A stretch of DNA of 64,000 nt from Entomortierella parvispora E1425 (Eukaryota > Fungi > Mortierellomycota): contig BQFW01000015.1 of the NCBI GenBank assembly GCA_020891255.1, forward strand, positions 2,480,001 to 2,544,000, read 5' to 3'. The notes beneath the pieces were generated by a model that worked only from the letters and a program-made list of their open reading frames with translations, did no database searches and had not been told where the DNA came from. A program made the translations under genes and the position numbers. The first letter of the stretch is position 1; each line of letters starts with the position of its first letter. Positions 4,766 to 60,861 of the stretch are shown one piece after another.

Positions 4766-5880
4766 ACGTCAGCAACAATAAATACCAACAAAGAAAAAAA
4801 TACCCAAGACGATTTGGTGGCAAATCCGACATAGTAAACCGGATGACGATGAGAAGAAGACGCGTGGCTAGCAAAGACATGCGACAAAGAGCATTACGAA
4901 AGCGCGGATCCTGCTCTTCGTGGCTCCCTCAGTGAAGATAGATCTTCCGGTTCCTGATGTGGTCCGTGCCTCCTTGTATGACACCGAGTCAACTCTGTCA
5001 GTGGGGCTGAAAGAAGGGTCACTCAGTCCCTTGAAATGCCTCTTCCCTGTCCCCTGTGGGCCTTGGGCTCGATCGGAATGGCCAAAAGATAGAAAATGAA
5101 AAGAGTGTCGTGATTGGGAAAGAAAATGTGACACGTTGAATTCATCCACCTTTCCGGGAGACATCCCCGCAGCTGCCCTCTGGAGGTGATGCCTCGATGT
5201 TCAACAGATTGGGTTGATAGTCCTCTTGTTCCTGAATCCCTTGAGACTCCTGGTCAGAGTTAGAGAAGAGACAAATGGTCGCGAAAGAGGGGACGGGTGA
5301 GGGGATTTGAATCAGGGCAAACCAGTCTGTATTGGTTTGTTGTATGAAGGGACCAAAGCAGACGAACGATTTCAACTCCCACCACCGTCTGTCTCCCCAG
5401 GCAGATAGACGGGGTTGACGCGAAAAGAAAGAAGGAAAAAAAAGTGGACACAAACGGTGGGCTCACTGTTTGTTGTTTGTTCAGTTGGATTTCTTAGCGT
5501 GTTCTCCCCCTCGCGTCTTCCAGAGTCGACTTCCGAAGGCTTTCGAAGGGTCACAATTGCAACTCCCTTATTTTTTGTGTGTCTTTTTCTAAGGAGACCT
5601 TCGCTTGCCCGTCCACGCCTCCTTCTTCTTTCTTCCACACTTTCCCAGCTCAACTCAGCTCTTTTGAGTACAGGAGAGAACCACAAGGGTCGACATGGAG
5701 GGAGGGCGCGCATGCTACTGATAGGTTGTTTACGCGAGCGAGGGAGACGACATCCCATGCTTTCATTCATTTTTTTTGCATTCGTCGAGTTCTTCAATAG
5801 CACGACTGATAATTGGACCATCCGTGCCTCCTTGCTCAGTTGGGAATGACCGATGGGGTCCATTGAGTACACACCGACCT

Positions 5881-5928
5881 ACGAGATAGATTTCAAGTAG
5901 GCTCACGAGATAGATTTCAAGTAGGCTC
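5881..5928. repeat. 24-bp tandem duplication (acgagatagatttcaagtaggctc x2)
   Basis: Two perfect adjacent copies, intergenic. Confidence 0.9.
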
Positions 5929-7389
5929 ACAGAGAAAAAGGGCACGATGTGTATTCGGTCAGCACCTCGATACCAATTCAGCATGTCGTGGGAGAGGGTG
6001 ATCTTCAATCTGTGCTCCGTTTCTTGGCTCCGCCCTTTTTTCTGCGTCAATCATCCACTTTTTTTTTTCTTTTTTTTTCTTTTTCTTTTTTTTTCTTTTT
6101 TTTTTTTGACACCCTTGGAACATGCACAATTTTGAGTGCATGACGAAAAGAAATACCCTTCTACAATACACTCAGCTCTTCTTCTCTTCCTTCGCCCGAC
6201 GAAACACTCATTGCAAACAAAGTGACACAAGCACTTGCCACTGCTCCTCTTTGTCCCTTCTTGCATGCACGATAATGCTTATTCCTTCTTCTCTCGGAAA
6301 GCTGTCCATTCCTCTGTGCACATCACACTCGAACCGATAAAAAGCCGTGCAGTTTTTACTGAAATCGCCGCCGCTGCTGCTGCTACCTGCTGCATTTCTT
6401 CGCCGAACCTATCTTTCGTCCCGCGACCCCAGTCCTCGTCTCATCCTGTTTGACCCGTTTAAATCGCGTTGTCTCTTTGTGCTCGAATCATTTTTCGTGT
6501 GTGTCCGTGCTCCTGTCTGTACCTGTGAGCACTCGAAGGTATGCGAGGAAGAATGCCTTGATCCGTGCTCGAACCATGCTGCTCTTGCCTGTTTTTTTTT
6601 TTCTTTTCTCTTCTCTCCAGCTCTCTTTGCCTTTGAGTCCTATTAGCTATTCACCTAATTGGATTCTTTACTCTTTGCTCCTTCCTCCCTCCCTCTATCT
6701 CCCTTTCCTCTTTCTTTCTCTCTCCCTCTCTCCCGGTTTCCCGGTTGTTTGCCCTCCCTGCTCGCCTTGCTGCGTCTTGGAGGCCCTCTTGTTTATTGTT
6801 CGTGTTATTGCCTGCAGTCTAATTCTCTCACTTACTCTCTCGCTTTGTTCAGCTTGCTCATTCACCTTCTCGTACCTTCATCCCTCAGTCCTTTTTGCGG
6901 CAAACCTTTTTTGCCCCACTTGCATTCGATATTGCAAAGAGAAGAAAAAAAACACTTCTCTCGATTGCTCAATCTCTTTTCCGCCTCGTGGATCGTAAAT
7001 CGCTCAACAAACAAAAGGACATTCTTTGCTTCCCTGAACATTTCTTTTTCACTGAAGATCTGCACACCGGCCAAAAAAAAAAGTGACCAACTAGATCCCA
7101 GATAACTCAACGACGCTTACCTACCCCTGGGTACCTAGTCTCTCCTCTCTTTCTTTCTTTTCGCTCCCAAACCTCAACACACGTCCACATACATTCTCTG
7201 TCTCTGTTCTTTGGCTCCTTGTCTGCCAACAAACAAAAATAGTTCTTCCATTCCAACCGAGCTCTTGGAGCAAAGAAGAGTCGAAGAGTCTACACCAATT
7301 GCAGTTTGGTCACCACCGTCTTCGGTCCAACCAACATCCCCAACAATAACACCACCACCCCAACAAGGGCTCAGCTCAGATCCCATACA

Positions 7390-8442
7390 ATGCCCATCGC
7401 CATCCTGAAGACGGACCGACTGGGTGCATCTCGGAACACTCGACCTTCGACCGACTCCGGACCCCTGCCTTGCCCTCTCTTCAGTGGCCATCTACTGAAA
7501 CTGGGCTCCAATGATCGCTGGCAATCTCGTCTCTTCACCTTTGATGGATCAGGTAACTCTTTTTTTTTTCTTTTTTTTTTGGTCTTCTTGCTTCTTCATC
7601 CACTTGTTGACTCCGGCATTGCGGCTGTCACACAAAAGAATCGTCAGTCCAGTAGCCGCACAGCAAAAAAGAACTCCGTTTTCCCTTGTTGGTGGACAAT
7701 TTTTGACCTAATGTAATTTTATTTACCTCACGCGATCTAGTGCTGGCGTGTGTGGGCAAGAAGCCAATGGCGCCAGTGATCATGACCTATGATCCTTATG
7801 TCTCTTCGCCCTTCATGCCCTCATCCTCATCATCTTGTCACCCGCATCCAATGAACCCAAACACGAAATGGTTCATCCGCCTGCAGTCCGTCACGAACAT
7901 TCAATTGCACAATGCCCACCCGAGAACCTACCACTGTTTTCCTTCTACGGCCAAGAAGGATGGCATGAAGGCTCTCTCGATCCAAACATCCGACGGAAAG
8001 ACCCTTGTCTTGCGCTCGACAAAAGATGTGGAGCTGGAACGATGGTACTTTGTGCTCTCGAAACTCTGGGAGTATCAACAACAACTTAGATCTATGGCCG
8101 TAACAGCAGCCGCGGCTGGTGGAGGGGGAGGCGCGCCTAGCGCAGGAGCGGGTGTCCATGTGGCAAATGGTGGTGGTGGAAATGGAGGGACAGATGCCAC
8201 TGCAGCTTTAGGCACGACTGGCGCCAAGCCAGAGCCAGAGGTGGAAGAAGAGACGCACGGAGCTCGTCATTTGACGGCACATCAACAGTCGGCTCAGCTG
8301 TTTCAGCGATACCTGGAAAAGCAATACCACCAAGACGGGCAGGCACCTCTTGGTCTGGAGCAACAACACCCTCACCACCCTCATGCATCCGCCCAGCGTC
8401 CCCTGCATCAACACACCCCTCAACAACAGCAGCAACATCCGC

Positions 8443-8476
<34 letters not shown>

Positions 8477-10568
8477 GCCAATGAAGCAGTCTTTTTATCA
8501 TTTACGCCCGGTCCAGAAGCGAACTCGCGAGAGCTTTCTCAACTACCAGATTCCACCACCTCCTAGAGTCTCGGCCTTCCTGCCTCAGGGCTTTGACTGG
8601 TCCTTGCAGGAACAAGGGGACGAAGATGACCTTCCCATGATGTTCGGCTCTGCCTCCTCTTTTCTCCAACAACACCATGAATCTCAATCCTTGACCAATG
8701 AGCGGGAACATCGACCCTTGGAAAGGCAACAAACCTGGAACCACCCCCAACAACACCAGCAACAACAACCGCAGGCGGCTGTCAATGGAGGGCCCAACAT
8801 GATATGCATGTCGAGGGCAGACCTAATTCGATCCTCCTCCACGGGTATGACGCCTAAAGCCAGACGTGTAGTTCCAGCGTCTAGTTCCATGGAGCCTGGA
8901 AAAGCGGCCATTATCGATAACTGGAGAAGGAGTTTGCTCTGTCCCCCTGTGCTGGAGGAATCCTCCTCCATTCAGCAGTTGAGTGATCGCGAGGCGCAAC
9001 AGTCCGTCCAAAAACGCGGGGGAGGGATGCTTGAGGGCGACCACAGCAAGATGGCAGTGGAAGACCCTTCATTCGAGCTGGATGATCATCGGACAGACAG
9101 TCGCGATATGGACTCGACCCTGAAGCACTCCTCGCTCGGATTATTGGATTATGGACTCCTTCAATCCGAAGGGGTCACCGGGGCTCGACCCGAAAATGGA
9201 AGTGTCTCCAGTGATGGTGACCACACGGCCCAACATCTTGGAAACCTCTACAGTCGAGGTGAGAAACACGGTCAGGGTCGAACATATCAGGGCCACCAAC
9301 GTTACAGTCATTTGCCAGGTCTAGATCGAGAGCTGGTTTCGGAGAACCATCTAGCGATGCCGCCAACTAGTAACGACAATGGCAGAACGATGGCAAGCAG
9401 AGAAGAGGATGAGCTTCCCCTTGGAATTTTGCAGATGAACCGACACTCTCGGTGGCTCAATACCCAACTCTCCTCAGATGACGGTACCTCAGGGATCAAC
9501 GGTGAGTCCCGACCACCCATCTTTGGTCCCGAAGTCGTTGAAGAGACGACTCGGGTCCATGTTCCACGTCATCAGCATACTTTGCTCCCCTCAGAGCCTA
9601 TTACGCCCAAGCAAGAGGTGCCCATGAATAAGACGGTCGCAACAAGTTCAGCTGGCTCTCAGGGAATGCCGCTGGAACATCACTCCGTCGGTATCCAACG
9701 AACGACTCCTTCGCCATCAAACCCAACGCTGAGTTTCCATGGCTCGAGCTATTCCCATCTTCCGATCAATGACCCAGACTTTGTGTTTACCGCCCTGAAC
9801 GGCAATGACAGAGGCCAGAGTCATAGATCTACCGCAGCTGCAGCTGCAGCTGCAGCAGCCTCGGGAGGGCGATCTCTGCATCGCGTTTCTAGCGTGTCAC
9901 CTCTTGGCACTGCCACAGATTCTACGGTGACAACAGCCAAATCCTCCATGCCTTCGGTGACCGAGGCCACCAAAAAGTTTCTGGTGATTGACACGAGTTC
10001 TTACACCAATATCAACGACAGCGACCCTCCACCCATGCCAGTCCGCCCACCGGGTGCATTCCTGAACTCTTTGAACTCTCCCGAGGATGAGGTTCTGCCT
10101 ACCTCATCCGTTGTTCCCTCTTTGGCGGTATCCCTACCTTCTTACACCAGTGCCTCGGCGACCTTGAGCAAACAAAAATCACAATCGTTGTCCAGATCCA
10201 ACAGTGCATCGTTGTCCAGATCCAGCAGTGCACGAATCCGACCGCGACATCCAAGACAGACTTGCTCGACCAGACCGAACATCGGCGCACCCATCCCTTT
10301 ACCGAACGAGCATGAACATGAACTGTTCAGATGGGATGAGAACGAAGAAGGGGAAGAACAGCAAGGACAACATCAGGCCAGAATGAAAAAGCAGGAAGAA
10401 GATGAGGATGAGCCCTTGGCCGTGACGCTTTCGAGACAACAGAGTTGGAAGCAGCGTCAATCTCATTATTCGACCCATCATTTGTCGATGCAGCATCCGC
10501 CGAGCTCTGTCCTGACCATGCAGACCAATAGTCAGAGCCAAAAACCGACGGCGAATGAGCTTTCGTAG
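7390..10568 (+). CDS. Hypothetical protein with N-terminal PH-like domain and long Q/S/H-rich disordered tail
   Basis: Exon 1 ...FSGHLLKLGSNDRWQSRLFTFDGS, intron ~7553-7740, then LSIQTSDGKTLVLRSTKDVELERWYFVLSKLW, typical of PH beta-strands and terminal helix; 942-aa open exon. Confidence 0.75.
8421..8478 (+). repeat. (CAA/CAG)n poly-Gln tract
   Basis: Visible trinucleotide repeat in CDS. Confidence 0.9.
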
Positions 10569-34257: not shown

Positions 34258-35754
34258 ATGCTAAAACTTGCTGCTTGTGTAGCTGGGTAAGCAAGAGAGA
34301 AAAAAAAAAAAAAACGATCTTCCAGATCGATCTTATGATCTAATTCTGACCGCTTTTTTTAACTCTTCCTCCTTTGTTCCTCTCCGCCCACTAGCATCTA
34401 TTCTTGCTTCCTCACATGGGGCTACTTCCAGGAGAAGGTCTCGACAACACCCTACGGTGAAGAGTCCGTTCGGTTCAAGTACTTCATCTTCCTGAACATG
34501 ATCCAGGCCATCTCTGCCTCGGCCACCGCCTATGCGTATTTGAAGATCCAACGGAAACCTTTGGCGATGCCCTCCAGGATGTTGCTTGGCAAGTACTTTC
34601 AAGTCGCCTTCTTCAATGCCATTGCCTCGCCCTTTTCATACGCGGCTTTGAAACACATCGACTACCCGACCATGATCTTGACAAAGTCTTGCAAGTTGGT
34701 CCCTGTCATGTTGATGAACATTTTGTTGTACCGTCGCAAATTCCCGACCTACAAATATGTCTGCGTCGCTCTGATCACGATGGGTGCTTCCGGGTTCATG
34801 CTGTTGGCCCCTGTGGACGAGCACAAGAAAGGAGCAGTCAATAGCTCTCTGTACGGGATGCTGCTGGTGATCATTAATCTGACAATTGACGGCGTGACAA
34901 ACTCGACCCAGGATCAGATCTTCCATACCTTCAAGGTGACAGGGCAGCAGATGATGTGCTTCATGAACCTATTCATGGCCGGATTCATGGCCATCTGGTT
35001 GTTGAACCCCTTCAACTCTGAACTAGGCAATGCGCTGGCGTTTTGTCGAGACCACCCCGCTATCATTCAGGACCTCTCGCTGTTTTGTCTCTGTGGAGCT
35101 CTTGGGCAGTGCTTCATCTTTTATACCCTCGAACAGTTTGGATCCTTGTCATTGGTGACCGTGACAGTGACCCGAAAGCTCTTCACCATCTTGCTCTCCG
35201 TGGTCGCATACGGACATTTCTTGAATGTCAGCCAGTGGTTGATGGTCGGCGTCGTCTTTTCGGGTATTGGCTTGGAAGCTTATGTGAAACGGAACGAGAA
35301 ACTGGAAAAGATGGGCGACAATCTGCCAAAGCATTCGCCCAAACCAGATCAGATTTCATTTAGTCAAGTGGAAATGATGAAGAAGGACAAGATTGAGGAC
35401 ATGAACTCCAATTTCGTCGGCATGGCTTCCAATTTCGGGGTCGGATCCGGCTTGGCCCAGTATGGGCAAGAGTTGTCGAACGGGAACAGTAGTACACAGC
35501 TGTTGCAGCCACCGACACAGTTCTTGCATCCTTCATATCAGACACAGACGCAGTTTCAGGATCAGCATGGCTACCAATTCATGTCATTACAACAGCAGTA
35601 CCAACAGCAACAGCAACAACATCACTCTCAATCACTACAACATCAGCAACCATTGGCCTACGCTAGCTCTAGTTCTGCAGTACCGGGAAAGCAGGTTGGA
35701 GGCGGTGGTGGTGGAAGACAGCGAACCAGTGTTATTGCTCCAAAACGTCATTAG
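34258..35754 (+). CDS. HUT1: UDP-galactose transporter homolog (SLC35B1/UAA family)
   Basis: MLKLAACVAG|IYSCFLTWGYFQEKV, ALKHIDYPTMILTKSCKLVPVM, DGVTNSTQD, TRKLFTILLSV. Confidence 0.92.
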
Positions 35755-36207: not shown

Positions 36208-36693
36208 TTAGCAGCCACTTCCGCACATCCAGTAGTGACCAGAGCAGGCTCCGAACTTGGAAGTCTGGGCGCACGAAACGCCCTGGACACCGTTCCAGTC
36301 GCAGTCGTATCCCTTGGCCTAAAAAAAAAAGAGCAAATAGACACCGTTAAAAACTTTACAGTTGCAAGAACAAAGACCACCTTATGTCGGACGATTGGAC
36401 TTCATGATTTCTCAAAAAGAAGAAACACTTGCCTGCAAGGCAGCCAAGAAGTTGCTGGCAGCGGAGTGGGCAGTGATGCTGGTGCAGCTGTTACTGCAGT
36501 AGTAGTAGCAGCGACCGTTGGCATCGTTGGTGTACTCGCAGGTGCGGACGCAAGCTTGGGCCGAGGCGGCGAGAACAAGGGCAATGGCAACAGCAGAGGT
36601 CCTAATGCGCAAAAAGGAGACAACAATGTTAGTAACCGGCTGTAGTGAGGTATGGTACACATCAGGGGCTGTTGGACTCGGCTCGTACTTCAT
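36208..36693 (-). CDS. Secreted 10-Cys small protein, copy 1 (94 aa)
   Basis: Exons 36693-36689, 36601-36433, 36318-36208 (second intron GC-AG): MKTSAVAIALVLAASAQA-CVRTCEYTNDANGRCYYYCSNSCTSITAHSAASNFLAALQAKGYDCDWNGVQGVSCAQTSKFGACSGHYWMCGSGC*. Confidence 0.9.
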
Positions 36694-36782
36694 GGTTGTT
36701 GGAGTTGAGATTGTAGGGAGTGGGTTGTTGTGGTTGTCTTTGTGGTTGGGGTTTGATAGTGAAGTGAGGGTAATCATGGCCC

Positions 36783-36789
36783 TTTTATA
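36783..36789 (-). promoter_or_regulatory. TATA box of copy 1
   Basis: TATAAAA about 90 nt upstream of the ATG; equivalent boxes precede copies 2 and 3. Confidence 0.6.
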
Positions 36790-38450
36790 TTGTTGCTGGC
36801 ATCAGCATTCATCCTGTCCCCTCCAACCGCCTCGCCTATCGTGTCCCTTCGGGGTACAAAGGCATCAAACAGTGAAACTCACACCCAATGAACTCATATT
36901 CCATATCTGCTGAGGGAAGTGGATGAACGGTTCGAGCATGTTCACAGTTCGTGATCATCCACACCTTGCCTTCCCAGGTGGCAGTTTAAGGTTTTTTACC
37001 GTTAGACGCGCCGCGATTTTCGTCCGTGCAGGAAAAATGGCTCTGTGTTTGTGGACGTGCTCTGGCTAAAATAGTTCGTAATCTGGCGTCAGCAGCCTCT
37101 TTAGAATCAGGGTCCTCGGGTCATTTTGCAATTGACCCGCTGAGTTCCAGGCGTTCATGCAGAGTCCAAAAGTGGGGAATGTTCATTTTTCCCCATGATT
37201 TGATATAAGTTTACACAAAAAAAAACACCTCTATTGGTGAGCCTTTACTGCCACAGGGATATGACCAGGAACGCGTGAAGATGGGAGGATGAGGCGAGAA
37301 TGACTTACATGGCTGGAAGTGCAATTGTATTCAGTTTCAAATTGATGGATATCTTGAGCACGACCATGTAGACGCAAACGTCCTCTTCCCACGCAAGATG
37401 GAACAACCAGCTTCCGGCACTCAAGAGCCTCCTGTCGGTTTCCCTCGCGAGGGACAATTCACGAGGTATGGTCATCCCTTGGCATCCAGGTTGATATGCA
37501 GTTCACACGTCCGCAAACAGTTGGAAGACGCCATTTTGCCGCCCAAACACCACCTTCGACGGCAGGTTCAGTGTACTTTATGTGAATAGAGAATTTCCTG
37601 TCGTCCCTACCGAGTGGGCGGATGGGAGACGTAGACAGGGGTAATTGGATCAGAAGGACAACTACATCTCTGGTGAATTGAGTGGACGTGTTGGCTTCAA
37701 TTGGACGGCTCATAATCAAAAAAGGATGGTCTTCTCATCAAATTGGAAGATTAACGTAAACCACCTTTTCATGCATTGAACTTCTAACTCAACTTGGCAA
37801 CAGCGAGGCAATTTTCCTATACTCAATTGTCCAGTTTGGGATCGTATTTGTTTATTTGTTCCCACTGACTATGATAACAATCATCTTTCCCACTGTGGCA
37901 ATTCGTGGTGACAAGGAGTCGCACAGGTTTTTGTTGATGTTGTTTTTAGATCTCCGTCTGGCAAACAACAAGAGCTCATTCTGGCAAAACGGTGCACTCG
38001 CCTATTTACGCTTGTGAATTGCGGACACAAGCGCCAGTTCTCGGGAAAATTAGTCGTTGCCACACAGTGTTGTAATCCTGAAAGGGCGCTACTACTGTAC
38101 GATGGGTATGATGATGGATCAAAAGGCTAGACCATTGGTCCCCTAACACAAGTGGTGGCAAAAAAAAGTACATGTCCATTTGTTCAATTCATGCATCGAC
38201 CACAGCCTCGGAGGACTATCTGCACGGACGGCGGGTCTAGCGGCCCCAAAAACCTTAAATTCGACCAGGGCACACGCGCCGGACGGCAACCAGTTTTGGT
38301 GGTTGTGAAAATACTAGAGTCGAAAGACCTCCAGTAAAATGGCCAGACATGAAGGAAAAGGAATCGTCGACTTGATCTCCAGTGTCCTCCGTCCCAGTTT
38401 TTCAATTCATCAGCGCACCTCTACTGACTTGAATGAATTACAGAGCAACC

Positions 38451-38461
38451 TATATATAAAA
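38451..38461 (+). promoter_or_regulatory. TATA box of copy 2
   Basis: TATATATAAAA about 85-90 nt upstream of ATG 38544. Confidence 0.6.
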
Positions 38462-38543
38462 GAACTCGGGTGCCTCTCTCCAAACCTCAAACACACCCTT
38501 TAGTCAAGCTATTCAAACGATTCCTACTCAATTCATCATCTCA

Positions 38544-38933
38544 ATGAAGTACGATCCCAAATTGTTCCTATGACTCGGTTGAATGGGTTGAATGTTGGCG
38601 GAATGACCAGTCATACTTAACTCTTTTTTTTTGTACTGGGCCTGGTCCCCTAGGTTCTCTGCCGCCGCCATTGCCTCGGTTTCCGTCGCCGCTGCCCAAG
38701 CTTGCTTGATTACCTGAAGTACCTCTGGAGACAAGAATGGAGTTTGCTCTTACCACTGCAAGCAGGCCTGTGACAGTATCACCGCCCACGCTGCCGCGTC
38801 CAACTTCCTGGCCGCTCTTCAGGCACGAGGCTTCTCATGCGACTTTGATGGAGTTGAGGACATCAACTGCACAAAGGACTCCAGGTTTGGAGAGTGCAAC
38901 AAGCACTACTGGACCTGCGGCAAGGACTGCTAA
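38544..38933 (+). pseudogene. Secreted 10-Cys small protein, copy 2 (in-frame TGA at Cys2, lacks intron 2)
   Basis: Exons 38544-38548, 38654-38933: MKFSAAAIASVSVAAAQA-CLIT*STSGDKNGVCSYHCKQACDSITAHAAASNFLAALQARGFSCDFDGVEDINCTKDSRFGECNKHYWTCGKDC*. Confidence 0.8.
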
Positions 38934-40022
38934 GTTCCCCGTTGCGAGGACCAGAGGTTTTTTTTCCCGTCGGGCACACTTCAATTGAACTGTGCAACCG
39001 CTGAGCAGTCAGGATGATCAAATAAAAATGACTATTCCCTACTTTTTTTTTGGTCAACTTGGAGTGACAGGATTACTGTGGGTCATGAAAAAGGATCTTG
39101 TGAGGAAGTGGGGGCCGGTGCGATCTTTTGACAAGCGGAGGGCTTTACTAAAGCTCATGGCAGTAAGCAGATAATGATTGGCACAGTTCAACCACAAATC
39201 TAGAACCCAAATGTGGTTACCTCAAGTCGGTCAATGCCGAGAGAGACAGAAGGTAGAAGTGAACGCGCCAGGTTTTTTCACTCAAGAAGACGTAGGTGGG
39301 GAGACTCTGTCAATAGAACTGGTTGAGCTCGTACCTAACTTCAGTTTTCCGTTATCAAACGAACCGGTTTTCATGAGGATATACCAAATTATCCACAAGG
39401 AGAAGTCTTTTCCAGGGCCCTGCAGGTATCCAGATCATGATCGATTGCCTCTTGTTCTAGACACAAAGTGCGGTCAGAGTGCTCAGCATCGAGCAATCAC
39501 CTTTCTATGTACATTTACATGTACATTCTGAACACAATCGCCTTGAGGACGGCGTTCATGCAGGATGAAGGAATTCACAAAAAAAAATTACACCAATTAT
39601 TTTCAGTTCGGGATAGGACGTCCTTCCTTGAACGGTGTCAAGTTTGATCTATTTGGTGGTGCCTGTCCTGGTGACATGTGGACCCTGAAAGAGAGGCGGG
39701 ACGGCTGACGCGAGAGCAGGTCATCCTTGACGCTGAGCAGAATGGGGCAAATCAACAGCGCGAACACAGACAAAAAATCATCTGCACGGACAAAATAGCG
39801 GCGCGCCTAACGGTGCAAGAACCTTAAACGTGCCCATGGGAAGACAGGCATGGATGATCTTGGACAAAACAGACCAAAGAGGGACAGTGATCACCAGCTC
39901 GCTCTCCAGTAACAAAGAGGGTCTATTCCAGCAGTGACAGTGAGTGCCCCCCTGCCCTCCGTTTTGTATTTGCTCTTGATTCAGTTTTATTACAATTGTA
40001 CCGTCGGCCTAGATGGCGCAGA

Positions 40023-40028
40023 TATAAA
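40023..40028 (+). promoter_or_regulatory. TATA box of copy 3
   Basis: TATAAA about 70 nt upstream of ATG 40098. Confidence 0.55.
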
Positions 40029-40097
40029 GCGACGTTTGGTCCACTCTCGCTTTCCGCAAAGAACCATCACTTCTCATCCCCCACCCTACCATCCAAT

Positions 40098-40572
40098 ATG
40101 AAGTAAGACACTCAAAAGCAGTAGCAGAGAAGTTGCTTCTCAGTGTGGACTTTCTGTTAATGACCATTGTGTTGGCTGTTTTGATTCTAGGACCTCTATC
40201 GTCGCCGTTGCCCTGGTCCTTGTCGCCTCTGCTCAGGCTTGCCTCAAGACTTGCGAGTACTCGGGAATGGACGGTAAAAACTGTCTGTACACTTGCAAGC
40301 AGGCTTGTGAAAGCATCCCTGCCTCTGAAGCCGCTGGCAATTTCTTGGCTGCTCTTCAGGCAAGTTCTTTTCTGATGATAAGGATAAGAGCCCTAGGTTT
40401 CGCATCCTCTTCAGATGACATTGGTCTAACTCGTGGAGACACTTTTTATTATCTTTAGGCTAAGGGATACAGCTGCAACTTTAACGGAAGCACTGGCGTC
40501 AAGTGCGATAGCACCAAGGCCAACTTTGGTGCCTGCACTGGTCACTACTGGCAGTGTGGAGCGGGCTGCTAA
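40098..40572 (+). CDS. Secreted 10-Cys small protein, copy 3 (95 aa)
   Basis: Exons 40098-40102, 40191-40359, 40459-40572 (GC-AG intron 2): MKTSIVAVALVLVASAQA-CLKTCEYSGMDGKNCLYTCKQACESIPASEAAGNFLAALQAKGYSCNFNGSTGVKCDSTKANFGACTGHYWQCGAGC*. Confidence 0.9.
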
Positions 40573-48127: not shown

Positions 48128-49335
48128 CCCAGACTGGGTGTCGATATTTTTGTACTATACCATTGCAGGCATTGGGAGCCATGTCTTTGTCGACTATGCT
48201 TCGCCCACGTTGGTGACTGTCTGCACCAAACCTTAGGGAAACGAACTGAGTAAATAAATACCCTTCTTAACGTTTTCATTCATGGGTTGGTTACCATGTC
48301 CAAGGGCTGTGTGGAGGCCATTTTCGGTTTCCCACGTCCAGCACTTGAAGGGGAGACCGCGTTGCATGAGACGCATGCTGTGTTCCATATTGTGACCAGG
48401 CCCTTTATTTTTATTTGGGTATGTTGATTTGATGTTAAAGATGAAAGAGCCACACTGCAGACCCATGCAAGGATCTTCATTGTTGTTGTTTTTTTGTTTT
48501 GCTGTGCTGAAATCATTCTTCCCACAGCATCTTGGAGACTTGGACCCTCTTTTTACCCCGCAAAATTGCAGGGATCGTTCCGCTCTAAAGCACCGTCGAC
48601 CATCCGTCCCCGACTATGGTCCGACAGGGCTAGCTCATTATCCTGCTTCAGGGTTGCTTCCTTGTGTCTCAGTGGATCGGTCTGGATGCAAAAGTTGATC
48701 CAGCTGAAGATGAATATGGCTCTTCTTGCACACGCACTCAGATCAAACAGCGCCAAGGGATGGGTTGGCGGTGTGTGTGTGTGTGCGCGTCCAGTTGACA
48801 CGGTCGAATGGCTTCTTCCGCATTCGTCCCTGCCGAGGAGAAGCCTCTTCAATGTCAGAAATGAAAATGGAGACAAGAAAAGGGAAGGGAAAGGTGGAGT
48901 TGGAATAGCGCCCACAAACTCAGCGTTGGTTCCAACAGCCCCGCCGGCCAACAGCATGGGCCAGATCGAGGGCACGAGAAGGAGAATACATATAAATAAT
49001 TGAGAGAAAACGGCGATTTCCCAGTCCGCGTGTGCTCAGATCCGCCACAAAAAACCCCTTGCGAAAATAAGCTTTGTGTCGAGTGTGCCGTGTGCCGTTG
49101 CAGCGTGCAGTGTGAAAAGTGCGTGTGTGGTGTGAAGTGTTTTTGTTTGAAAAAAAAAAAGATTTTTTTTTCCGTTGCCCTGCGTGTGGAGAGAACGGAT
49201 GAGACACTCCTCCCTCTCCTCTCTTCCTTTCTTCTTACTCTTCTTCTCTTCGTTCTGTTCTCTCCTTTCTCTCCACTCCCCCTTTCCACCCTACTTCTCA
49301 CTTGGCTTCGGGACTCGACCCTTCCGTTGCCTCCC

Positions 49336-52173
49336 ATGGCTGACCACAACCACCATCATAACAACAACAGCAACAGCAACAACAACAACTACTACAACGA
49401 CCAAGAGGTCGATCTCGAGAACCAGGGCTTCAGTCGCTCCACCACGGCCACAGACCTTTCCACCTCGTCTTCTACTCTACCTCACACCAGCAATGCTCTC
49501 TCCACTCCAGACTCACATCCATCCAACCTCCCCGCCATCTCCCTCTCCTCTTCACAAGGCAACGGTGCTTCTTCTGGCTTTTCTCTCCCTGCCAGCAACC
49601 CTTTCACAGATCTGCCGGATCAACAAAACCCCTTTTCACCGGCGGCCACGCCTCTGGCTACCCCTCTTGGATCACCCACAACCGAACTTCGCAAGCTGAC
49701 CCTAGGTGTCGAACGATATGCTCGAGCCATCGAGGACCCTGGTCCTATGGGAAGCTTCTCGGGTGTGGTTCCTTTGCCTTCTCTGTCCCAGTCAACACCT
49801 CTGACCACCCGTCGCCGTCCTTCCAAGATTCTGCTGGATGCTCTCCAATCCGCAGCAGGAAGCCAGGACCACCATGGATTGAGTTCATCACCCACGCCAG
49901 AAGAGCCAACGGAGCCTTCAGGTAAAAGCTCGGGCATGTCGCTAAACTCAATCAAGAGGGCCATCTCTGGCAAATACCGCCATACGCAGGATGTCACGAT
50001 GATCGATATGGAACCTAGCCGCAAGGGTGCTGAGAGCAACAACGTTAACAATATCGACGATCTCGGCAATCCATTTGCCAGCCCAACCTTGTCCGCTGGA
50101 TCAGGCGATGCCCAGATTGGTTTACTAGAGAGTCTTTCGTACTCACCTCAACCGCTCCTATTGCCTACTATGGCCACCACGCCACAACAGCTGGCCGTGA
50201 ACGAGAGTCGTCCTGGCGCCGAGAATGATGCTGTCCGCCACCGACTGGAGCAAAGCAACAAAATGGCTGGAGAACCGATCGCGATGGTGGAGGTGGAACC
50301 GGATGCGGTTCCGGCAGGCATGCGTCGTCGGAAGCCCAAAGGCGGTATTCTGAGTCATTTGTTAAAGCTTCAAAGGAACGAGGCCGCGGCCGCTGCCTCT
50401 GCTACAGGATCAAATGCTGGACGTGCCAAACCTCAACATGCAGCTGTCAAGAAGACAAAGAAGGGCTTTTATTACCGATCGTCGTCTAAGAATAACTCAC
50501 TTGTGGATCTGAACTCGCCCTCGGTCTCCACCACCCCTCGAGTCTCGCCCAGAAACTCTAGAGTCTTTGACTTGGAGCCCAGCAACAACGTCTCGACCCG
50601 ATTGCCGACTCAGCCCTCGACCTCGATCAACTTTACAAAGCCAGATCATCACCAGCACCCGCTTAATGAAAACATTGAGGAGATGGAGGCCGTCAGTGCT
50701 GCAGCTTCTGCTGCAACGTTGACCGCCAATTTGGGCATTCACAGAGATATTGCCGAGATTTTGACCCGGCAATCGTTCTTGATCATGGTGGCAAAGGCCT
50801 TGATTCTCTATGGTGCTCCATCCCACAGGATCGAGGAAACCTGCGCTCTGTTGGCAAGAAAGATGGACGTAGATGCTTCGTTTGCGCTGCTGCCAGGACT
50901 CATGACGATCTCATTCAGCGATCCCGAAACCCATACCAGTGACACGCGCCATCTTCGATGCACCCAGGGAATGGACATGTACAAACTCTCAAAGGTCTAT
51001 ACCATCGCCATGAGTGTCCTTCATGGTGGATCAATTGAAGCTGCCAACAAAGATTTGGATGTAGTTACCTTGGAGCCTGGTTATTATCCAGTTTGGGTCA
51101 CTGTCGCGTCATGGATGGGCGCTGCAGCATTTGTTGCACCCTTGGCATTTAACGGTAGTTGGCTCGATACTGCGCTTGCAGGATTGTGTGGATTGATCGT
51201 TGGTCTTTTGGGTGTAGTGGCTGCCAAGTTCCCAGTCTACGGAAATGTGTTTGAAATGACTTCGAGTATCTTGGTCGGATTCATTGCAAAGTCGTTTGGC
51301 GACAGGGTCTGCTTCTCGGCCGTGGCCTTGGCAGGTGTGGTGGTCCTGTTGCCAGGATTGTTACTGACAGCGTCGATCATGGAGCTGGCGTCGAGGAATA
51401 TTGTCTCGGGTGCCGTTCGTATGTTCTATGCGTTGATGTATGCCTTCTTCCTGGGATTCGGTCTGTCGCTTGGAGGCGAGATCTGGGACTCTGTAAGTAC
51501 CGCGCGGCGATCAAAGGAAACACCCAGCGAGCGGAGAAACTTTTGAAGAAAACTGACTCGTTCAGCTTTTTATTATTTATTGGATTAGATTACAGGCGCA
51601 TCGTCGACTCCGTCAGCCGCTTCTTGTGAAAATGGTGTCGATCGCTGGTGGTTTTTCCTTATTTTCCCAGCGGTCTCGACTTCGATCAACATTGTCTTTA
51701 ACGCCCATCCTTCCCAGTGGATTGGAATGACCTTGGTCACGGCTGTTGGCTTCACCGTGTCGTATTTTATGACAGCCGGTCCTCAAGTGACGCCTGCTGT
51801 CGCTGCTTTTGCAGTCGGCTTGGCTGGCCAGGCTTATGGCAGAATTACTGGCAAACTCAGCTATGTTCCTTTGTTGAGTGGAGTTCTCCTGCTAGTCCCA
51901 GGAAGTGTTGGTGTCCGCAGTGTCCTTTCCATGATCGGCAGTGATCCCAGTCAAGGATTCTCGTTTGCTTTAGAGATGGTTAATATCTCGGTCAGCATCA
52001 CGGTAAGCCCTTGTTCCCTGTTGTGTTGTGATCTGTCTGCTATGATAATGAGGTCGACATCCATGAATTCTCATCCTGTATCCCCTTTGCCTTTGTTCCT
52101 TTAGCTCGGCGTGTTCTGCTCTGTGCTGGTCTGGTACCCATTCTGGCGAAAGAGCACATTCATGAACTTTTAA
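49336..52173 (+). CDS. PRM10: ThrE/DUF1212 family threonine/serine exporter (Prm10-like)
   Basis: KALILYGAPSHRIEE, SFSDPET.TSDT, VVVLLPGLL...ELASRNIVSGAVR, LLVPG; long disordered N-terminus. Confidence 0.88.
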
Positions 52174-54667: not shown

Positions 54668-57620
54668 ATGCCGACCAGAAAACCTATTCGCTCCTCTCTC
54701 CTCCCCTCTCCTTTGTCCTCTTCTATCCAGTACTCTGCCCTGAGTGCCCACGACGACAACGACGACAACTGGGACCACACCGACCACTACGCCTTTGACA
54801 GCATGTCCTCCACGCCTGATCACTCCACGCCTTCAAGGCGGGACTCGCTTGAAATCGAGGTGAGTTACTTCTTCAAAGTCATTGTTTGGTCGTGTCATAT
54901 AACGGCCCTGTATTTTTTTTTCTGCTGCTGCACGAACCAACTGACTGAAAATAAAAAAAAAAAAAAAAAAAAATCAAACTAGACCCATTCTCAGACACAA
55001 GGACCCGCGGGCGGTGGTGGATACAATGGAATCGCAGGTGTGGGTGCCTCTGAATTCGACGCGTCCACGTCGACGTCGGCCTCCAACATCTCGCGTAGCA
55101 GTTCTATCGCCCACAGACACATACCTTCTCACAACAATAGCACCAGGGGACAGAGCTCAGAGGGGCAGGTCGAAAGACAAGGGCAGGATGAATATGAAGG
55201 CGACAAACGGGATCATCACAACGGACCGTTTGTGAAGAATACACACTGGAATCGCTGTTGGATCCGTTATATTGCGGTATCTAGCATTCTGGTAGCGGTT
55301 GCTCTTCTGGTGACGCTGCTTGTTCTCAAGCCTTGGCAACACCGATACCGTAAGTGCGGGTTAGGGCGCACGCGTAGGCTTCAGTGTGTCTATCCAAAAG
55401 ATGGCACGGGTTGTCCAAAGCTAACCGGTTTTGACGTTTTGTTTACCTGCCACTAGAATTGGCGCCAGTCAACAATGGAGCGGTCAAGGCCCTCCCAGCT
55501 GAACAACCCATTTGGCCCATTCCCAGAGAGTTTGCAACAGGCACAGAAAAGATTTCACTTAGTCCAAACTTTCAGATCACGGTCAAGGCCTCCTCACCAG
55601 TGAACGGAGTATCCAGCCCCCTGATCGAGAAGGCGATTGCTCGATGCATGGATCGGATAAAAATCAAACTCAACACCACAATATACGACACACCATCGTT
55701 GGACACACCCGTCAGTACACCAGCAACTGGACTTCTTTCGCAACTGGTGATTATCGTGGACAACAGTGCAGCAGACTTGGATTATGGGGTGGATGAATCG
55801 TACACGCTCAACATCTCTTCTTCTGCCAATACCCCATCTTCAAAATCAACAAATCAGCAGGATGATGATTCGGATATGGTCAAGCCATCCCAAAGGAAGC
55901 GAGCCGTACCCGTAAACAATCTCCAGGAAAGCTCGGCGACGATCAGGGCGAGCACTCAGTGGGGGGTCTTGCATGCATTGGAAACGTTTAGTCAGTTGGT
56001 CGTGGCCACTGCAGCGGAGGCTCCCACAGAGCCTGTGAACAACACTCTTAATATCCCGAACGCGCCTTGGTCGATTTACGATGCCCCTCGGTATTCGCAC
56101 AGAGGACTGTTGTTGGACACGTCTCGTCATTTCGTAGCTGTGAAGGATATCATTCGGACCTTGGAGGCTATGACGGTCGTCAAACTCAATGTCTTCCATT
56201 GGCATGTGTTGGATCAACAATCGTACCCGCTCGTATCAAAGACGTTTCCTGAATTGACGGCCAAAGGCGCTGAGCGCGCAGACCGCGTTTACTCTTATGA
56301 CGACGTTGCATCCATCATTCAGTATGGACAAGAGGTTTGTAATTTATCTTGTTTTTAGAGATGAGGCTGTGGGAACTATGAGGTGGGAAGGAGTGCCTAA
56401 TACTTTTTTTTTTTTGTGGCTCATTGTTTCAATAGAGAGGAATCAGAGTCATTCCCGAATTTGATGCGCCTGGCCATGCTGCCAGTTGGGGGCGTGCCTT
56501 CCCCAACATCACAGTCTGCGTGGATGCGCAACCTCACCAAGCATACGGAGCGGAACCACCTGCGGGACAGCTGGATCCTTTGGAGCCTTTTACATACCAG
56601 GTCCTGAACGGACTGATCAAGGAATGGTCAGCTCAATTCCCGGATAAACAGGTTCATATCGGAGGCGATGAGATCAATTTCAACTGCTGGAAGACCTCCG
56701 AGCGCTTGAAAGACTACATCGACCATCCTTCAAGCCGCGAAGGGTATGAGAGCAAACTGCCGGCCACTATTGTGAACCAGGATCCGAGGAATCAGATGAA
56801 GCAGTTTGGAGGATCGGGATCGCAGTCGGGAGGAGACAAACTGCTGGATCTGTATCTGAGTAAAGCTCTGGGCATGTATCTCCAGCAGGGCAAGCGGCCT
56901 ATCGCATGGGAAGAGTTGGCCCTGGAGCATCAAGTCAATCTGCCCGAGTCGACGATTGTTCACGTTTGGAAGAATGCAAGAAATGCAAAGAAAAGTATGT
57001 CGATATTTGCCATCTACTTAACTTGCTCTATTGGAACAAATCTATGTACTCCTCTGACCTTTTCTTTTCCCACCCTTGTAGTTATTGACCAAGGGCTACC
57101 AGTTATCCTCTCGAGTGCAGAGTTTTGGTACCTTGATTGTGGTATGGGATCTTGGCTTATCGGATCCCTCGGCCAAAGTTGGTGCAAGTATGCTTCATGG
57201 CAACGAAGTAAGTCTATCCACCCGGCCCGTCCACTTTTTGACTCGTTTTTTATGTCTTCCTGTTCCAGAACTAACCCCTCCTCTCTCCTGGTGTTGCTAC
57301 CCGATTATACAGTTTATTCTTACAATTGGGAAGCCGAACTCTCGGAAGCACAGAAAAAAATGGTCCTCGGGGGTGAAATTGCTATGTGGGGGGAGCAAAC
57401 AGACGGCCACAACTTGGATTCCAACCTCTGGCCCCGTTCTGCTGCTGCGGCAGAAGTCCTCTGGTCGGGCTCCAAGGATGACAATGGCGAAATTCGCCCC
57501 TTGGTGCAGGCTTTCAAACGTCTTTCACAGGTTCGAGAACGTTTGGTCGAGATGGGTGTCCAAGCGGCGCCCATTGCTCCATCTTGGTGTGGCAAACATC
57601 CTGAAGGATGCCTTGCATGA
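54668..57620 (+). CDS. Beta-N-acetylhexosaminidase GH20, type II membrane-anchored
   Basis: TM YIAVSSILVAVALLVTLLVL; PIWPIP; DESYTL; LETFSQL; YSHRGLLLDTSRHF; KLNVFHWH; PEFDAPGH; catalytic HIGGDE; WYLDCG; GGEIAMWGEQ; WPRSAA. Confidence 0.93.
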
Positions 57621-57722: not shown

Positions 57723-59993
57723 TTATTGACGACGCTGGCGGACAAAACTTTGAAGCTCTCGAATAAACTTCTTTTCAAAGATGAACACAACCAGCATTGC
57801 GGCCGCAAACGTCGAGACGCCGATTCCAAGATGCAGCACTTTACTCGAGAAACCATCCGACATGCTAGCCCGCTCGTTGCTCACAGAGGTGATAACAAAC
57901 GCCACCCCAAAAGCTGCCAAGACTGCTGGACTAGGCGCAATTGTCTTCCAGGGCACTGCTTTGAAAGTTTTGATGAATCCGCCAAGTCCTGTAGTTGATC
58001 CTGTTGAAAGTGGGTCCGTTCCTGTTTGTGCCTGCACCCCAGTCGATCCGGAATGATGTCCACTTTCAGGAATGTATCGACCATAGTAGCCTGAGAGGAA
58101 CCAAGTACTCCACAATATACGCATCGACAGATTGACACAGTTGGCCAGTACGATTCCGCTCGCGCCCATGTCCAAGGTCCCCATCAGGAACGCACCAGTA
58201 GCGCAAAATACGGCCGAAAAGCCCACCATCCAAAACGACAACGTTTTCAGCTCACGCTCGGATGCCACCGCCTGGACCACGGCTTCTGTAATGCCGTTCA
58301 GACCCATGATCGGTACGTAGTAGCAGTACAGACTCAGGACTGCGGGCACTGTCGTCTCTCTTGACCAGTACCGCCCTACAACCATTTCGATCAAGGTCGT
58401 AGTGTAGTGTGTTCCAAAAGCGATGAAGATCAGGCCCAAAAAGATGTGGAACTTCATAATCGTCAATAGGAGGTTGCGAGAGAGGACCAAGTTCCCGATC
58501 TGGGTCTCGGAAAGTCCTTTGTTGATGTCCTGGCCGGAAGAAGGTGAAGTCTTCTGTCCAACGTCACTCAATAGTCGACTGAAGAGGGTTCGGGCAATCT
58601 CCTCCATAGGTTGGAATAAAATCCTGGCAATCAAGGAACCTATATATCATGATGGGTATTAGAGTCAGGTGCCTACAAAACCAACCACTCAGTATGAACA
58701 GACATACGAACAGAGTCAACTTACCATAGTTGATAACAAAGGCGTATACTCCCAGCTCAGTATCCTGAGTGAATTTCGCCAACATCATCTTGTCCCCCTC
58801 TGTCAAGACATGCTTCAGAAGCGACTGGGCCGTCAAAGTCATAGACAACTTGGAGAGTGCAGTATCAAAATAAAATTCTTCCTGTCTAGTGCAGTTCGAA
58901 AAAGGGCAGCTCAGTTAATCCATGGATATCGATTGACAGTACAGACATGTACATCAGCTCTTTCTTACTGCCCGTCCTTGCCGGCCCGGACCAGCTTTCG
59001 TGGCAAGAGCGCTCTCAGCGAAATGACATCCTGGTTCGCGTTTGGTTGAAGAGTTGCATCGTCTGTCTTCTTGTGCAACGCTTTTGCCATTCGAATCTTC
59101 TCGTGCTCCTGCTTCTCCAAGCTCTTACTCCTGAAGGCCAACAAGAACCCTCCAAGAGTCAATAAAGCATACGCAAACTGGGCGATTGCAAATGCTAGGA
59201 CGCCCATGGTGTTGATCGACGATCCTGTTGTATCCTTCGTGACCGAGTGGGCTAGTGACGAGCGTGCTCCATAGATGGTGAGGGCACATGTGAGGATGCA
59301 GCGGACGATGACAGCCGTGCCTTCGACCGAGACACGGGTCTTGAACCAGAGCTTGTATTGAGCCACCATGAACATTGGTTCCGCCAACAACTCAATCAAG
59401 GCAGATAAGCCATAGAGATAGATCGAAAGCCTGTAACCGGGTGATTTGGCCTCGCTGAGGTCATCCACCTGCGAGAGATAATAACTGACGGCCGCACACG
59501 TCATAATGACGCCAACGGGAATGGGTGCATAGACCATGTTGACCAGCTTTTGTAGCCTGTATGCTTCAGTCCCTGGTCGAATGATGGCAGAATCCTTGCT
59601 CTCTTTGCGCTTGGAGTCCTTTGAATCTGTTGATCCACTGCTACCAGCGCCAGCGCCGGTGTTGTCTGCAGTATCTTTGGTGTCGTCACTGACGCGAATG
59701 GCGGCGCATCGGACACCCTCGCGTGATAGGAAGAGGATGGTATTGAGAAGCAACTCGAGCTTCACAGAGGCAATACCGAGGGTCTCTGCTGTGGTGAATC
59801 GAAGGAGGACCTGGTTCAGCGTAAAAGTCAGCATCCTGGAGACGAACTGGAGGAGCACCAGGTAGCTGGCTCCTTGTACAGAGGATGAGAGGATCGAGGA
59901 GGCTTCTGCAGACTCTACAGGAACGGTCGCGGTCTCTTTGTGTTGTCCTGGAGTGGACCGTTGGCGGAGCTTTGGCTCCGACAGAGAGTCCAT
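57723..59993 (-). CDS. RFT1: Man5GlcNAc2-PP-dolichol translocation protein
   Basis: GASYLVLLQFVSRMLTF.LNQ, LELLLNTILFLSRE..R, ELLAEP, LKHVLTEGDK, GVYAFVINY|GSLIARILFQPMEE, NGITEA. Confidence 0.95.
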
Positions 59994-60861
59994 GATGAGA
60001 AGAGTGCTGTGATGATGAGGGAGACCGAAGGAGGATGCGAGAGGATGTGAGAGTGGTGATGATGAAGAGGAAAGAGATCTTCCATGCAAAAATGAATGAA
60101 TGAAAGCAGCGCACGCGCCACGTGCCAGTGGCTGGTGCTGGTGCCACCAACTTTGTGGAAATGCTCCATGTGCAAATGTATGTATGCCTGCACCACACTT
60201 CTCTTCCTAGATAAATCACAGTGCCTGGCGACACCCTTCAGGCAATACTCGGCCGGTAGACTACTCGCTCGAAATCACTGACCAGCGTTTCATACCCTAT
60301 GTTTCCTTATGCCCTAGCTCTTTCCACCATCGTATCGACATACTAATTCCTTGGCCGATGAGTTCTTCTTAGGCTGCAGTGAGTCGAGCCCTTTCTTTCT
60401 TTTAATTCTGCTGCACAGAGAACACCTACTTTCCAAGCGAGAACCATTGTAAATGGTCGTAGCGGATTGTTGCCCAGTCCCTCAATCGGCTAGAAATCCT
60501 CTGCCAGAATTTGTCGCAAGAATAAAGGTATCCTTTTTTCGAATTTCAACAAAGCAACGATATTCTCATGGAGCTGCAAAGTATCGCGTGGTATCCGCCT
60601 AGAAAGAGATAGAGTCGGTGACTCCCAGAAGCGCAAGAGTGTCGCTGTTCATTAACAGCAGACTGTTGCATTCAGGCACTAAATTTGGTGGCGCACTATT
60701 TCCTCGCACAGTGACGTAGCCCCCCCCAAGCGCGCGTTATTTCCACGCACGACTGGCTTCCGGCCACCCTGCCCTGTCTTCTTTTCTCTCTGTGCTTCCA
60801 TTCCTTTCATCTCTTCACTCCCACCCTCCCCACTCTTTTTTCTTCGTCAGATCAATTCACA

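Follow-up and report, generated by a model that had tools for sequence, protein, structure and literature searches.

A tandem cluster in Entomortierella parvispora encoding predicted secreted ten-cysteine mini-proteins of an unnamed family

Antifungals, killer toxins, effectors, and enzyme inhibitors are all found among small secreted proteins rich in disulfides. KP4 (Pfam PF09044) and KP6, the killer toxins of Ustilago maydis, are small secreted α/β proteins with several disulfides (five in KP4) and a patchy distribution, both of which are used in interference competition; the KP6 subunits form an α/β sandwich with two antiparallel helices. Defensin-like and PAF/AFP proteins comprise 50–60 amino acids (aa), are strongly cationic, and adopt cysteine-stabilised αβ (CSαβ) or β-barrel folds. 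To our knowledge, almost none of the small disulfide-rich secreted proteins are known from Mortierellomycotina or Mucorales, which are ecologically dominant soil fungi, the Mucorales including the agents of mucormycosis. The locus described here lies in a window of 64,000 nucleotides (nt) from Entomortierella parvispora E1425 (contig BQFW01000015.1, forward-strand positions 2,480,001 to 2,544,000), and all coordinates below count from the first letter of this window. Positions 36208–40572 hold three paralogous gene copies, each of which was rebuilt from the window sequence with its splice junctions located. Judged from their sequence, copies 1 and 3 are real, intact genes of signal-peptide-bearing 10-Cys mini-proteins, for which secretion is predicted. 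The locus is a tandem cluster that has evolved by birth and death and belongs to an unnamed family of small proteins with predicted secretion; an extracellular, target-binding role of these proteins in defence or competition is given a probability of roughly 45%, a figure that includes the structural claims made below.

Copy 1 (36208–36693, minus strand) consists of exons 36693–36689 (ATGAA), 36601–36433, and 36318–36208, the last ending with TAA at 36210–36208. Its product of 94 aa comprises an 18-aa signal peptide and a 76-aa mature peptide with 10 Cys. Intron 1 (36602–36688, 87 nt) is of the GT-AG type, and intron 2 (36319–36432, 114 nt) is of the GC-AG type, with the donor GCAAGT. Copy 3 (40098–40572, plus strand) follows the same plan, with exons 40098–40102, 40191–40359, and 40459–40572, a GT-AG intron 1 of 88 nt (40103–40190), a GC-AG intron 2 of 99 nt (40360–40458) with the same donor, GCAAGT, and a product of 95 aa. 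Copy 2 (38544–38933, plus strand), the pseudogene of the cluster, has exons 38544–38548 and 38654–38933 separated by a 105-nt intron 1 (38549–38653), and lacks intron 2. All three copies start with a 5-nt first exon, ATGAA ("MK"), followed by the donor GTA(C/A)GA; exon 2, which has no in-frame ATG and therefore requires the micro-exon, completes the Lys codon with its third base and encodes the remainder of the signal-like peptide. By sequence alone, MK is followed by a hydrophobic core of 13 residues, with A-Q-A occupying positions -3 to -1. The mature peptides of 76–77 aa carry a Cys at both ends and ten in all (13%), with the spacing C-x3-C-x9-C-x3-C-x3-C-x22-C-x9-C-x8/9-C-x6-C-x3-C, together with the segments NFLAALQA(K/R)G(Y/F) and HYWxCG. 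In size and Cys content, they fall within the range of small secreted cysteine-rich proteins (under ~200–300 aa; Cys above ~4–5%).

Much of this had been anticipated by a sequence-only reading of the locus. The micro-exon, the 18-aa signal-like peptide ending in AQA, and the Cys at both ends of the mature peptide were all recovered, and the similarity of copies 1 and 3, put at about 55% by that reading, is 58% identity for the mature part and 63% overall (57% for copies 1 and 2, and 55% for copies 2 and 3). The Cys spacing and both segments were also as described, but the pattern is not intact in copy 2, where a TGA occupies the Cys2 position; thus the three genes announced are real, clustered, and paralogous, but one of them is a pseudogene.

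The donor of intron 2 in copies 1 and 3 is GC instead of GT and lies in a strong context, CAG|GCAAGT. Splicing at GC-AG restores "LQ|AKGY", collinear with copy 2, which has no such intron, and with both genes of a homologous locus in Gryganskiella cystojenkinii, and it is only through this splice that the conserved C-terminal half of copies 1 and 3 is restored. Alternative GT donors were rejected, since translation then meets a stop codon or continues in an unrelated frame. The intron occupies an identical codon boundary in copies 1 and 3, the intron bodies being unalignable, and is absent from copy 2 and from both Gryganskiella genes; its distribution on the tree would call either for three losses of the 3' intron or for a gain that gene conversion then spread. 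Just past the acceptor, the exons of both copies read GCY AAG G, an echo of the way the intron begins (GCAAG T).

In a six-frame search of the whole 38.9-Mb genome, the exons match one another at E = 1e-5 to 1e-8. These values, together with homologues at E-values down to 1.5e-25, place the similarity far beyond chance. A family profile matches copy 2 contiguously (E = 2.5e-24) and copies 1 and 3 exon by exon (1e-7 to 1e-10 per exon), and neither six-frame nor profile searches detected any further paralogue in the genome, which holds just the three copies.

An exhaustive HMMER search with a profile built from the alignment of the three window copies retrieved 43 representatives at E ≤ 1e-3, 16 of them at E ≤ 1e-10. 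With the exception of a spurious repeat protein (P0038), nearly all are ~95 aa long, begin with a hydrophobic stretch, and keep the 10-Cys pattern of the window copies; the segment just before Cys1 is variable in sequence but hydrophobic in all homologues. The best homologue comes from G. cystojenkinii (E = 1.5e-25), which is joined among the Mortierellaceae by Linnemannia elongata and Lunasporangiospora selenospora. Other members from Mucoromycota belong to Mucor mucedo, M. velutinosus, Halteromyces radiatus, Absidia repens, Backusella circina, Umbelopsis ramanniana, and Calcarisporiella thermophila. Ascomycete members are found in ~10 species of Fusarium (including F. pseudograminearum, FPSE_08192), in Purpureocillium lilacinum and P. 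lavendulum, and in Aspergillus taichungensis and A. campestris, and the sole bacterial member in Nocardia blacklockiae. Overall, at least 20 named species hold homologues of the same architecture. The family, which the sequence-only reading took to be lineage-specific, therefore is not, since its members are spread over Mucoromycota (three lineages), Ascomycota (three genera), and a single actinobacterium.

Six GenBank entries illustrate how these proteins have been catalogued: KAG0041512.1 from G. cystojenkinii, FPSE_08192, OAQ34029.1 from L. elongata, XP_051457136.1 from M. mucedo, ORZ14590.1 from A. repens, and WP_195104515.1 from N. blacklockiae. All are true homologues (E = 1e-25 to 1e-4), sharing with the window proteins a length of ~95 aa, a predicted signal peptide, the pattern of ten Cys, an F-L-x-x-L helix, and an FGxCxxHxWxCG tail, and all lack a name, a domain assignment, and a studied function. 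Every family member is labelled "hypothetical" or bears an obviously mis-transferred name, as is the case for P0055 from Purpureocillium ("aureobasidin resistance protein Aur1") and for the Fusarium heterosporum member ("kinetochore Sim4 subunit Fta4"). The 5-nt first exon, which is common to the window and Gryganskiella only, offers a concrete case of genes escaping automated annotation, as does the GC-AG intron 2, which is confined to window copies 1 and 3. The suspicion that gene callers miss such genes is borne out by KAG0041512.1 (contig JAAAIG010001337.1), which is annotated as "partial" and starts at exon 2, its ATGAA exon having been missed. In the coordinates of the examined locus, this gene spans 2233–2621 (ATGAA at 2233–2237), and the neighbouring paralogue at 3758–4162 was correctly called.

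The absence of any named relative, also foreseen from the sequence, holds across the collections that were searched. In Pfam, neither the window pieces (E ≤ 10) nor 35 family members (E ≤ 1) had a match, NCBIfam gave none to the family, and a profile search of all PDB sequences gave none at E ≤ 10. The Pfam profiles of defensin, PAF/AFP, hydrophobin, CFEM, and cerato-platanin did not match either, and the Cys pattern is unlike the spacings typical of these five groups. It was the exhaustive profile search alone that revealed the family; word-indexed protein searches in which copy 2, the family alignment, or a Fusarium member served as the query added little, the copy 2 query being blind to the family. 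A literature search by accession, locus tag, and topic retrieved no description of it. The family is thus unnamed and unstudied, yet not restricted to one lineage, and it is classified here as a new family inside a well-known class, the small secreted cysteine-rich proteins of fungi.

In a tree of 41 rows, the tandem pair of Gryganskiella genes groups with all three copies of the window (support 96/95), and the five genes of this clade all keep the micro-exon and its donor. Copy 3 is sister, and thus orthologous, to Gryganskiella gene 2 (97/84), whereas copies 1 and 2 are sisters of each other (98/86). From this topology it follows that the cluster is older than the split of the two genera, and that members have been gained and lost since. 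Pairwise ratios of nonsynonymous to synonymous substitution rates (dN/dS) all lie between 0.12 and 0.52, with dS at ~1–2.5 and synonymous sites saturated. Such values indicate purifying selection, which argues for the genes being functional, and no gene-wide diversifying selection, so that the description of the copies as diversifying is not supported. Tandem arrays of three, two, and six copies occur in the window, Gryganskiella, and Halteromyces, respectively. The six H. radiatus members (JAIWZO010000003.1) lie on one strand within 7 kb (2446–9580 of the examined locus), with introns at two positions (~46 and ~89 of the profile), neither of which is shared with the window genes. The F. pseudograminearum gene is single and intron-less, and lies 20–35 kb from a chromosome end.

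The mature domains of Purpureocillium (P0055/P0023) and M. velutinosus (P0056) differ at 15 of 75 positions, which corresponds to ~80% identity across phyla; the Purpureocillium proteins, both encoded on megabase contigs, are far closer to that of M. velutinosus than to the Fusarium members. The N. blacklockiae gene (WP_195104515.1; 8001–8342 of the examined locus), which belongs to an 8-Cys subgroup, lies on a 268-kb bacterial contig (JADLRJ010000010.1), directly upstream of a gene for a MauE/DoxX membrane protein. A survey of 400 other genomes from the order of Nocardia did not detect the family, and a search for related loci with the Nocardia protein returned only the protein itself. Horizontal transfer would be the natural inference in both cases, with the Nocardia gene as a candidate for transfer from a fungus to a bacterium.

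The fold was predicted for a proxy, namely the mature domain of the Gryganskiella homologue (P0001:18-94), which is 61–67% identical to the window copies, using a 52-row family alignment that included the window exons. The model (mean predicted local distance difference test (pLDDT) 90.4; predicted template modelling score (pTM) 0.77) consists of a long β-hairpin (residues 2–10 and 14–19), a 14-residue helix (28–41), and three further strands. The helix comprises the "NFLGALQA" segment, in agreement with the helix expected there from the sequence. On the other hand, the KP6-like fold that had been proposed is not supported: the topology is ββαβββ with a single long helix, and no KP6, KP4, or disulfide-rich toxin appears among the structural matches listed, which cover the top 50 of Foldseek in the PDB, the top 50 of a wide VIA-align search, a pdb_via search, and BFVD. 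Among the top 50 Foldseek matches in the PDB, nothing was better than E = 0.25; the best BFVD match had E = 0.096; and the ESM-Atlas structure matches, with template modelling scores of 0.66 or less, were pieces of unrelated enzymes. ESM-Atlas feature searches (scores of 0.81 or below) and a single-sequence AlphaFold model of a copy 2 fragment (pLDDT 50) were uninformative. The fold is, therefore, one predicted with high confidence and without a detectable relative.

Cysteines are lost in pairs among the homologues: C5 and C9 in five sequences that make up the 8-Cys subgroup, C2 and C6 in F. venenatum P0005, and C1 and C10 in Calcarisporiella P0022. These joint losses suggest the disulfides C1–C10, C2–C6, and C5–C9, in which case C3 and C4 would pair with C7 and C8. 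Apart from the cysteines, eight columns (Y17, F34, L38, F61, G62, H67, W69, and G72) are conserved in more than 85% of the members, and the net charge across the family ranges from -9 to +7.

As the sequence-only reading had noticed, the promoters of the three copies each hold a TATA box, which precedes the ATG by 75–97 nt. It reads ATATAAAA in copy 1 (36783–36790, minus strand, 97 nt before the ATG), TATATATAAAAG in copy 2 (38451–38462, plus strand, 93 nt), and TATAAAG in copy 3 (40023–40029, plus strand, 75 nt). AATAAA signals are found downstream of the genes. Otherwise, the promoters can hardly be aligned except for a block ~300 nt before the ATG, with the pattern CTGCACGGAC ... GCGGCGCG(T/C)CTAACGG ... 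AACCTTAAA, which is confined to these three promoters within the genome. In copy 1, the element reads CTGCACGGAC-N8-GCGGCGCGTCTAACGG (36999–37031, minus strand, ~306–338 nt before the ATG) and in copy 3, CTGCACGGAC-N7-GCGGCGCGCCTAACGG (39782–39813, plus strand, ~285–316 nt before the ATG). The 17-nt core, GCGGCGCG(T/C)CTAACGGT, does not vary among copies 1 and 3 and the Gryganskiella gene orthologous to copy 3, and represents the sole non-coding blastn match between the window and the Gryganskiella locus, the contig of which shows no synteny with the window beyond the genes and this promoter element. As a phylogenetic footprint shared by the window and Gryganskiella only, the core is a likely transcription-factor site, and the resemblance of TAACGG to a Myb core offers a tentative lead to the factor. 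The footprint is mutated in copy 2 (38220–38243, plus strand), where the degenerate element CTGCACGGAC GGCGGGTCTAGCGG shows an 8–9-nt deletion and a change of TAACGG to TAGCGG.

The surroundings of the cluster are those of ordinary housekeeping genes. Flanking open reading frames at 34498–35754, 49000–51546, and 56520–57620 (plus strand) and 57723–60089 (minus strand) encode a nucleotide-sugar transporter of the UAA family, a ThrE-domain protein, a hexosaminidase of glycoside hydrolase family 20 (GH20), and Rft1. The cluster is not embedded in any obvious secondary-metabolite or effector island.

The cluster has evolved by birth and death, with copies 1 and 3 intact and copy 2 recently lost to a Cys2-to-stop change, its promoter element having decayed as well. 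In a defence or competition system, the TATA promoters, under the shared upstream site, would drive the genes, and a cleavable signal peptide at the N-terminus would direct the proteins into the secretory pathway for oxidation and export. The mature product is predicted to be a compact domain of ~76 residues, in which a β-hairpin, a long helix, and three strands are locked by ten invariant cysteines. Outside the cell, these proteins may, as stable molecules, bind a specific target that other organisms present, in a toxin-like or antimicrobial fashion, with the C-terminal loop F-G-x-C-x2-H-x-W-x-C-G and the strand C-x-Y-x-C as the candidate binding surface. Recognition of a specific target is preferred to the action of a generic cationic peptide because of the wide range of net charge, which makes a nonspecific cationic membrane disruptor unlikely.

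A role in defence or competition is ranked first because of the predicted export and disulfide stabilisation, the tandem birth-and-death pattern, the subtelomeric position in Fusarium, and the patchy and seemingly transfer-prone distribution of the family. Tandem arrays, a pseudogene within an array, a location near a chromosome end, and a patchy distribution are all features typical of toxin and competition genes. Several points weigh against this role: Pfam, PDB, and structure searches gave no sequence or structural similarity to a known toxin, antimicrobial, or effector; dN/dS below 1 over the whole gene carries no arms-race signature; the modelled fold is that of a homologue standing in for the window copies; and one homologue is fused to a papain-like protease, which hints at a function as an inhibitor or chaperone.

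That fusion suggests the main rival explanation, in which the proteins are secreted inhibitors or regulators of hydrolases, especially of papain-like cysteine proteases, either their own or those of a competitor, acting through a disulfide-locked α/β domain. In P0040 (eukprot gene8356-10263_t, 388 aa), the family domain (1–97) forms the N-terminus, ahead of no more than the C-terminal half of an I29 propeptide and an entire Peptidase_C1 domain, thus occupying the usual place of the inhibitory prodomain, and small disulfide-rich α/β proteins are a common inhibitor format. However, P0040 is a single fusion and may be a merged gene model, neither Pfam nor the PDB gave any similarity to an inhibitor family, and no protease gene adjoins the cluster in the window, leaving this explanation rather unlikely.

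Similarly improbable is a role as a cell-wall, spore-surface, or carbohydrate-binding protein, involved in chitin or chitosan shielding or in adhesion through conserved Tyr, Phe, His, and Trp residues. Such residues are indeed among the conserved columns (Y17, F34, F61, H67, and W69), and the family, variable in charge, is richest in Mucoromycota, the walls of which are rich in chitosan. Nevertheless, no match to any carbohydrate-binding module was obtained, the sequences of the window proteins contain no glycosylphosphatidylinositol (GPI) signal, repeat, or Ser/Thr-rich linker, and the Nocardia member is hard to square with a role at the fungal wall.

Copy 2 raises the question of whether all three genes might be functional, its TGA (38715–38717, plus strand) being read as selenocysteine or read through. 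The codon coincides exactly with the Cys2 column, and finding TGA where relatives keep a Cys is the classic selenocysteine/cysteine signature. The frame is otherwise fully conserved: the profile match covers the whole gene, with "1 TGA" inside, and dN/dS against its relatives is 0.17–0.47. Some early-diverging fungi do use selenocysteine. However, the genome shows no selenocysteine tRNA (the best Rfam match scores 34.4 bits against a cut-off of 47 bits, and is a tRNA-Tyr according to ARAGORN), selenophosphate synthetase (selD) was not found in it, and the region has no Rfam match resembling a selenocysteine insertion sequence (SECIS) at E ≤ 10. The promoter footprint of copy 2 is degraded, and its terminal branch is the longest in its clade. 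The selenocysteine reading, rejected for want of these three components, is highly improbable, and copy 2, with a TGA at Cys2 in a genome without selenocysteine machinery, is evidently a recently inactivated pseudogene carrying a presumed nonsense mutation.

Just as remote is the explanation that the models are not real genes but chance open reading frame fragments or dead relics, for, unusual as a 5-nt first exon and GC-AG introns are, the architecture recurs in homologues of at least 20 named species, dN/dS is below 1, the micro-exon and its donor are conserved in 5/5 genes of the clade, and the conserved C-terminal half is restored in both copies only by the GC-AG splice.

Extending the defence or competition role, a bolder possibility is that these genes found a new structural superfamily, whose secreted proteins with five disulfides would be toxins or would bind targets. 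The family would have moved horizontally among Mucoromycota, hypocrealean and Aspergillus ascomycetes, and an actinobacterium, and in Mortierellaceae a dedicated regulator recognising the conserved site GCGGCGCG(T/C)CTAACGGT would switch it on. This combined proposal is speculative, and unlikely as it stands.

When set against the systems described at the outset, the family resembles KP4, KP6, and their fungal KP4-like and KP6-like relatives in being made of small α/β proteins with predicted secretion, several presumed disulfides, and a patchy distribution. It differs from KP4 in that no Kp4 match was obtained for the window pieces (E ≤ 10) or for 35 family members (E ≤ 1), and the best-ranked structure matches from the PDB and BFVD include no KP4 or KP6 chain, although such match lists do not strictly exclude a family that is not listed. 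Contrary to the two antiparallel helices of the KP6 subunits, its model has one long helix and five strands. Fungal defensin-like and PAF/AFP proteins are likewise secreted, small, and disulfide-rich, whereas the family has a mature length of 76 aa, charges from -9 to +7, and no match to them in Pfam or in fold. Avr2 (a protease inhibitor) and Avr4 (a chitin binder) from Cladosporium fulvum may be placed in the same operational class, that of small secreted cysteine-rich target binders, with no relationship in sequence or fold; the hosts of the family are mostly saprotrophic Mucoromycota, and not dedicated plant pathogens. Members are also present in cereal-pathogenic Fusarium and in the nematophagous or opportunistic Purpureocillium. 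At a compact 76 aa, the family provides a tractable new scaffold, as well as a test case for the exchange of secreted proteins across phyla.

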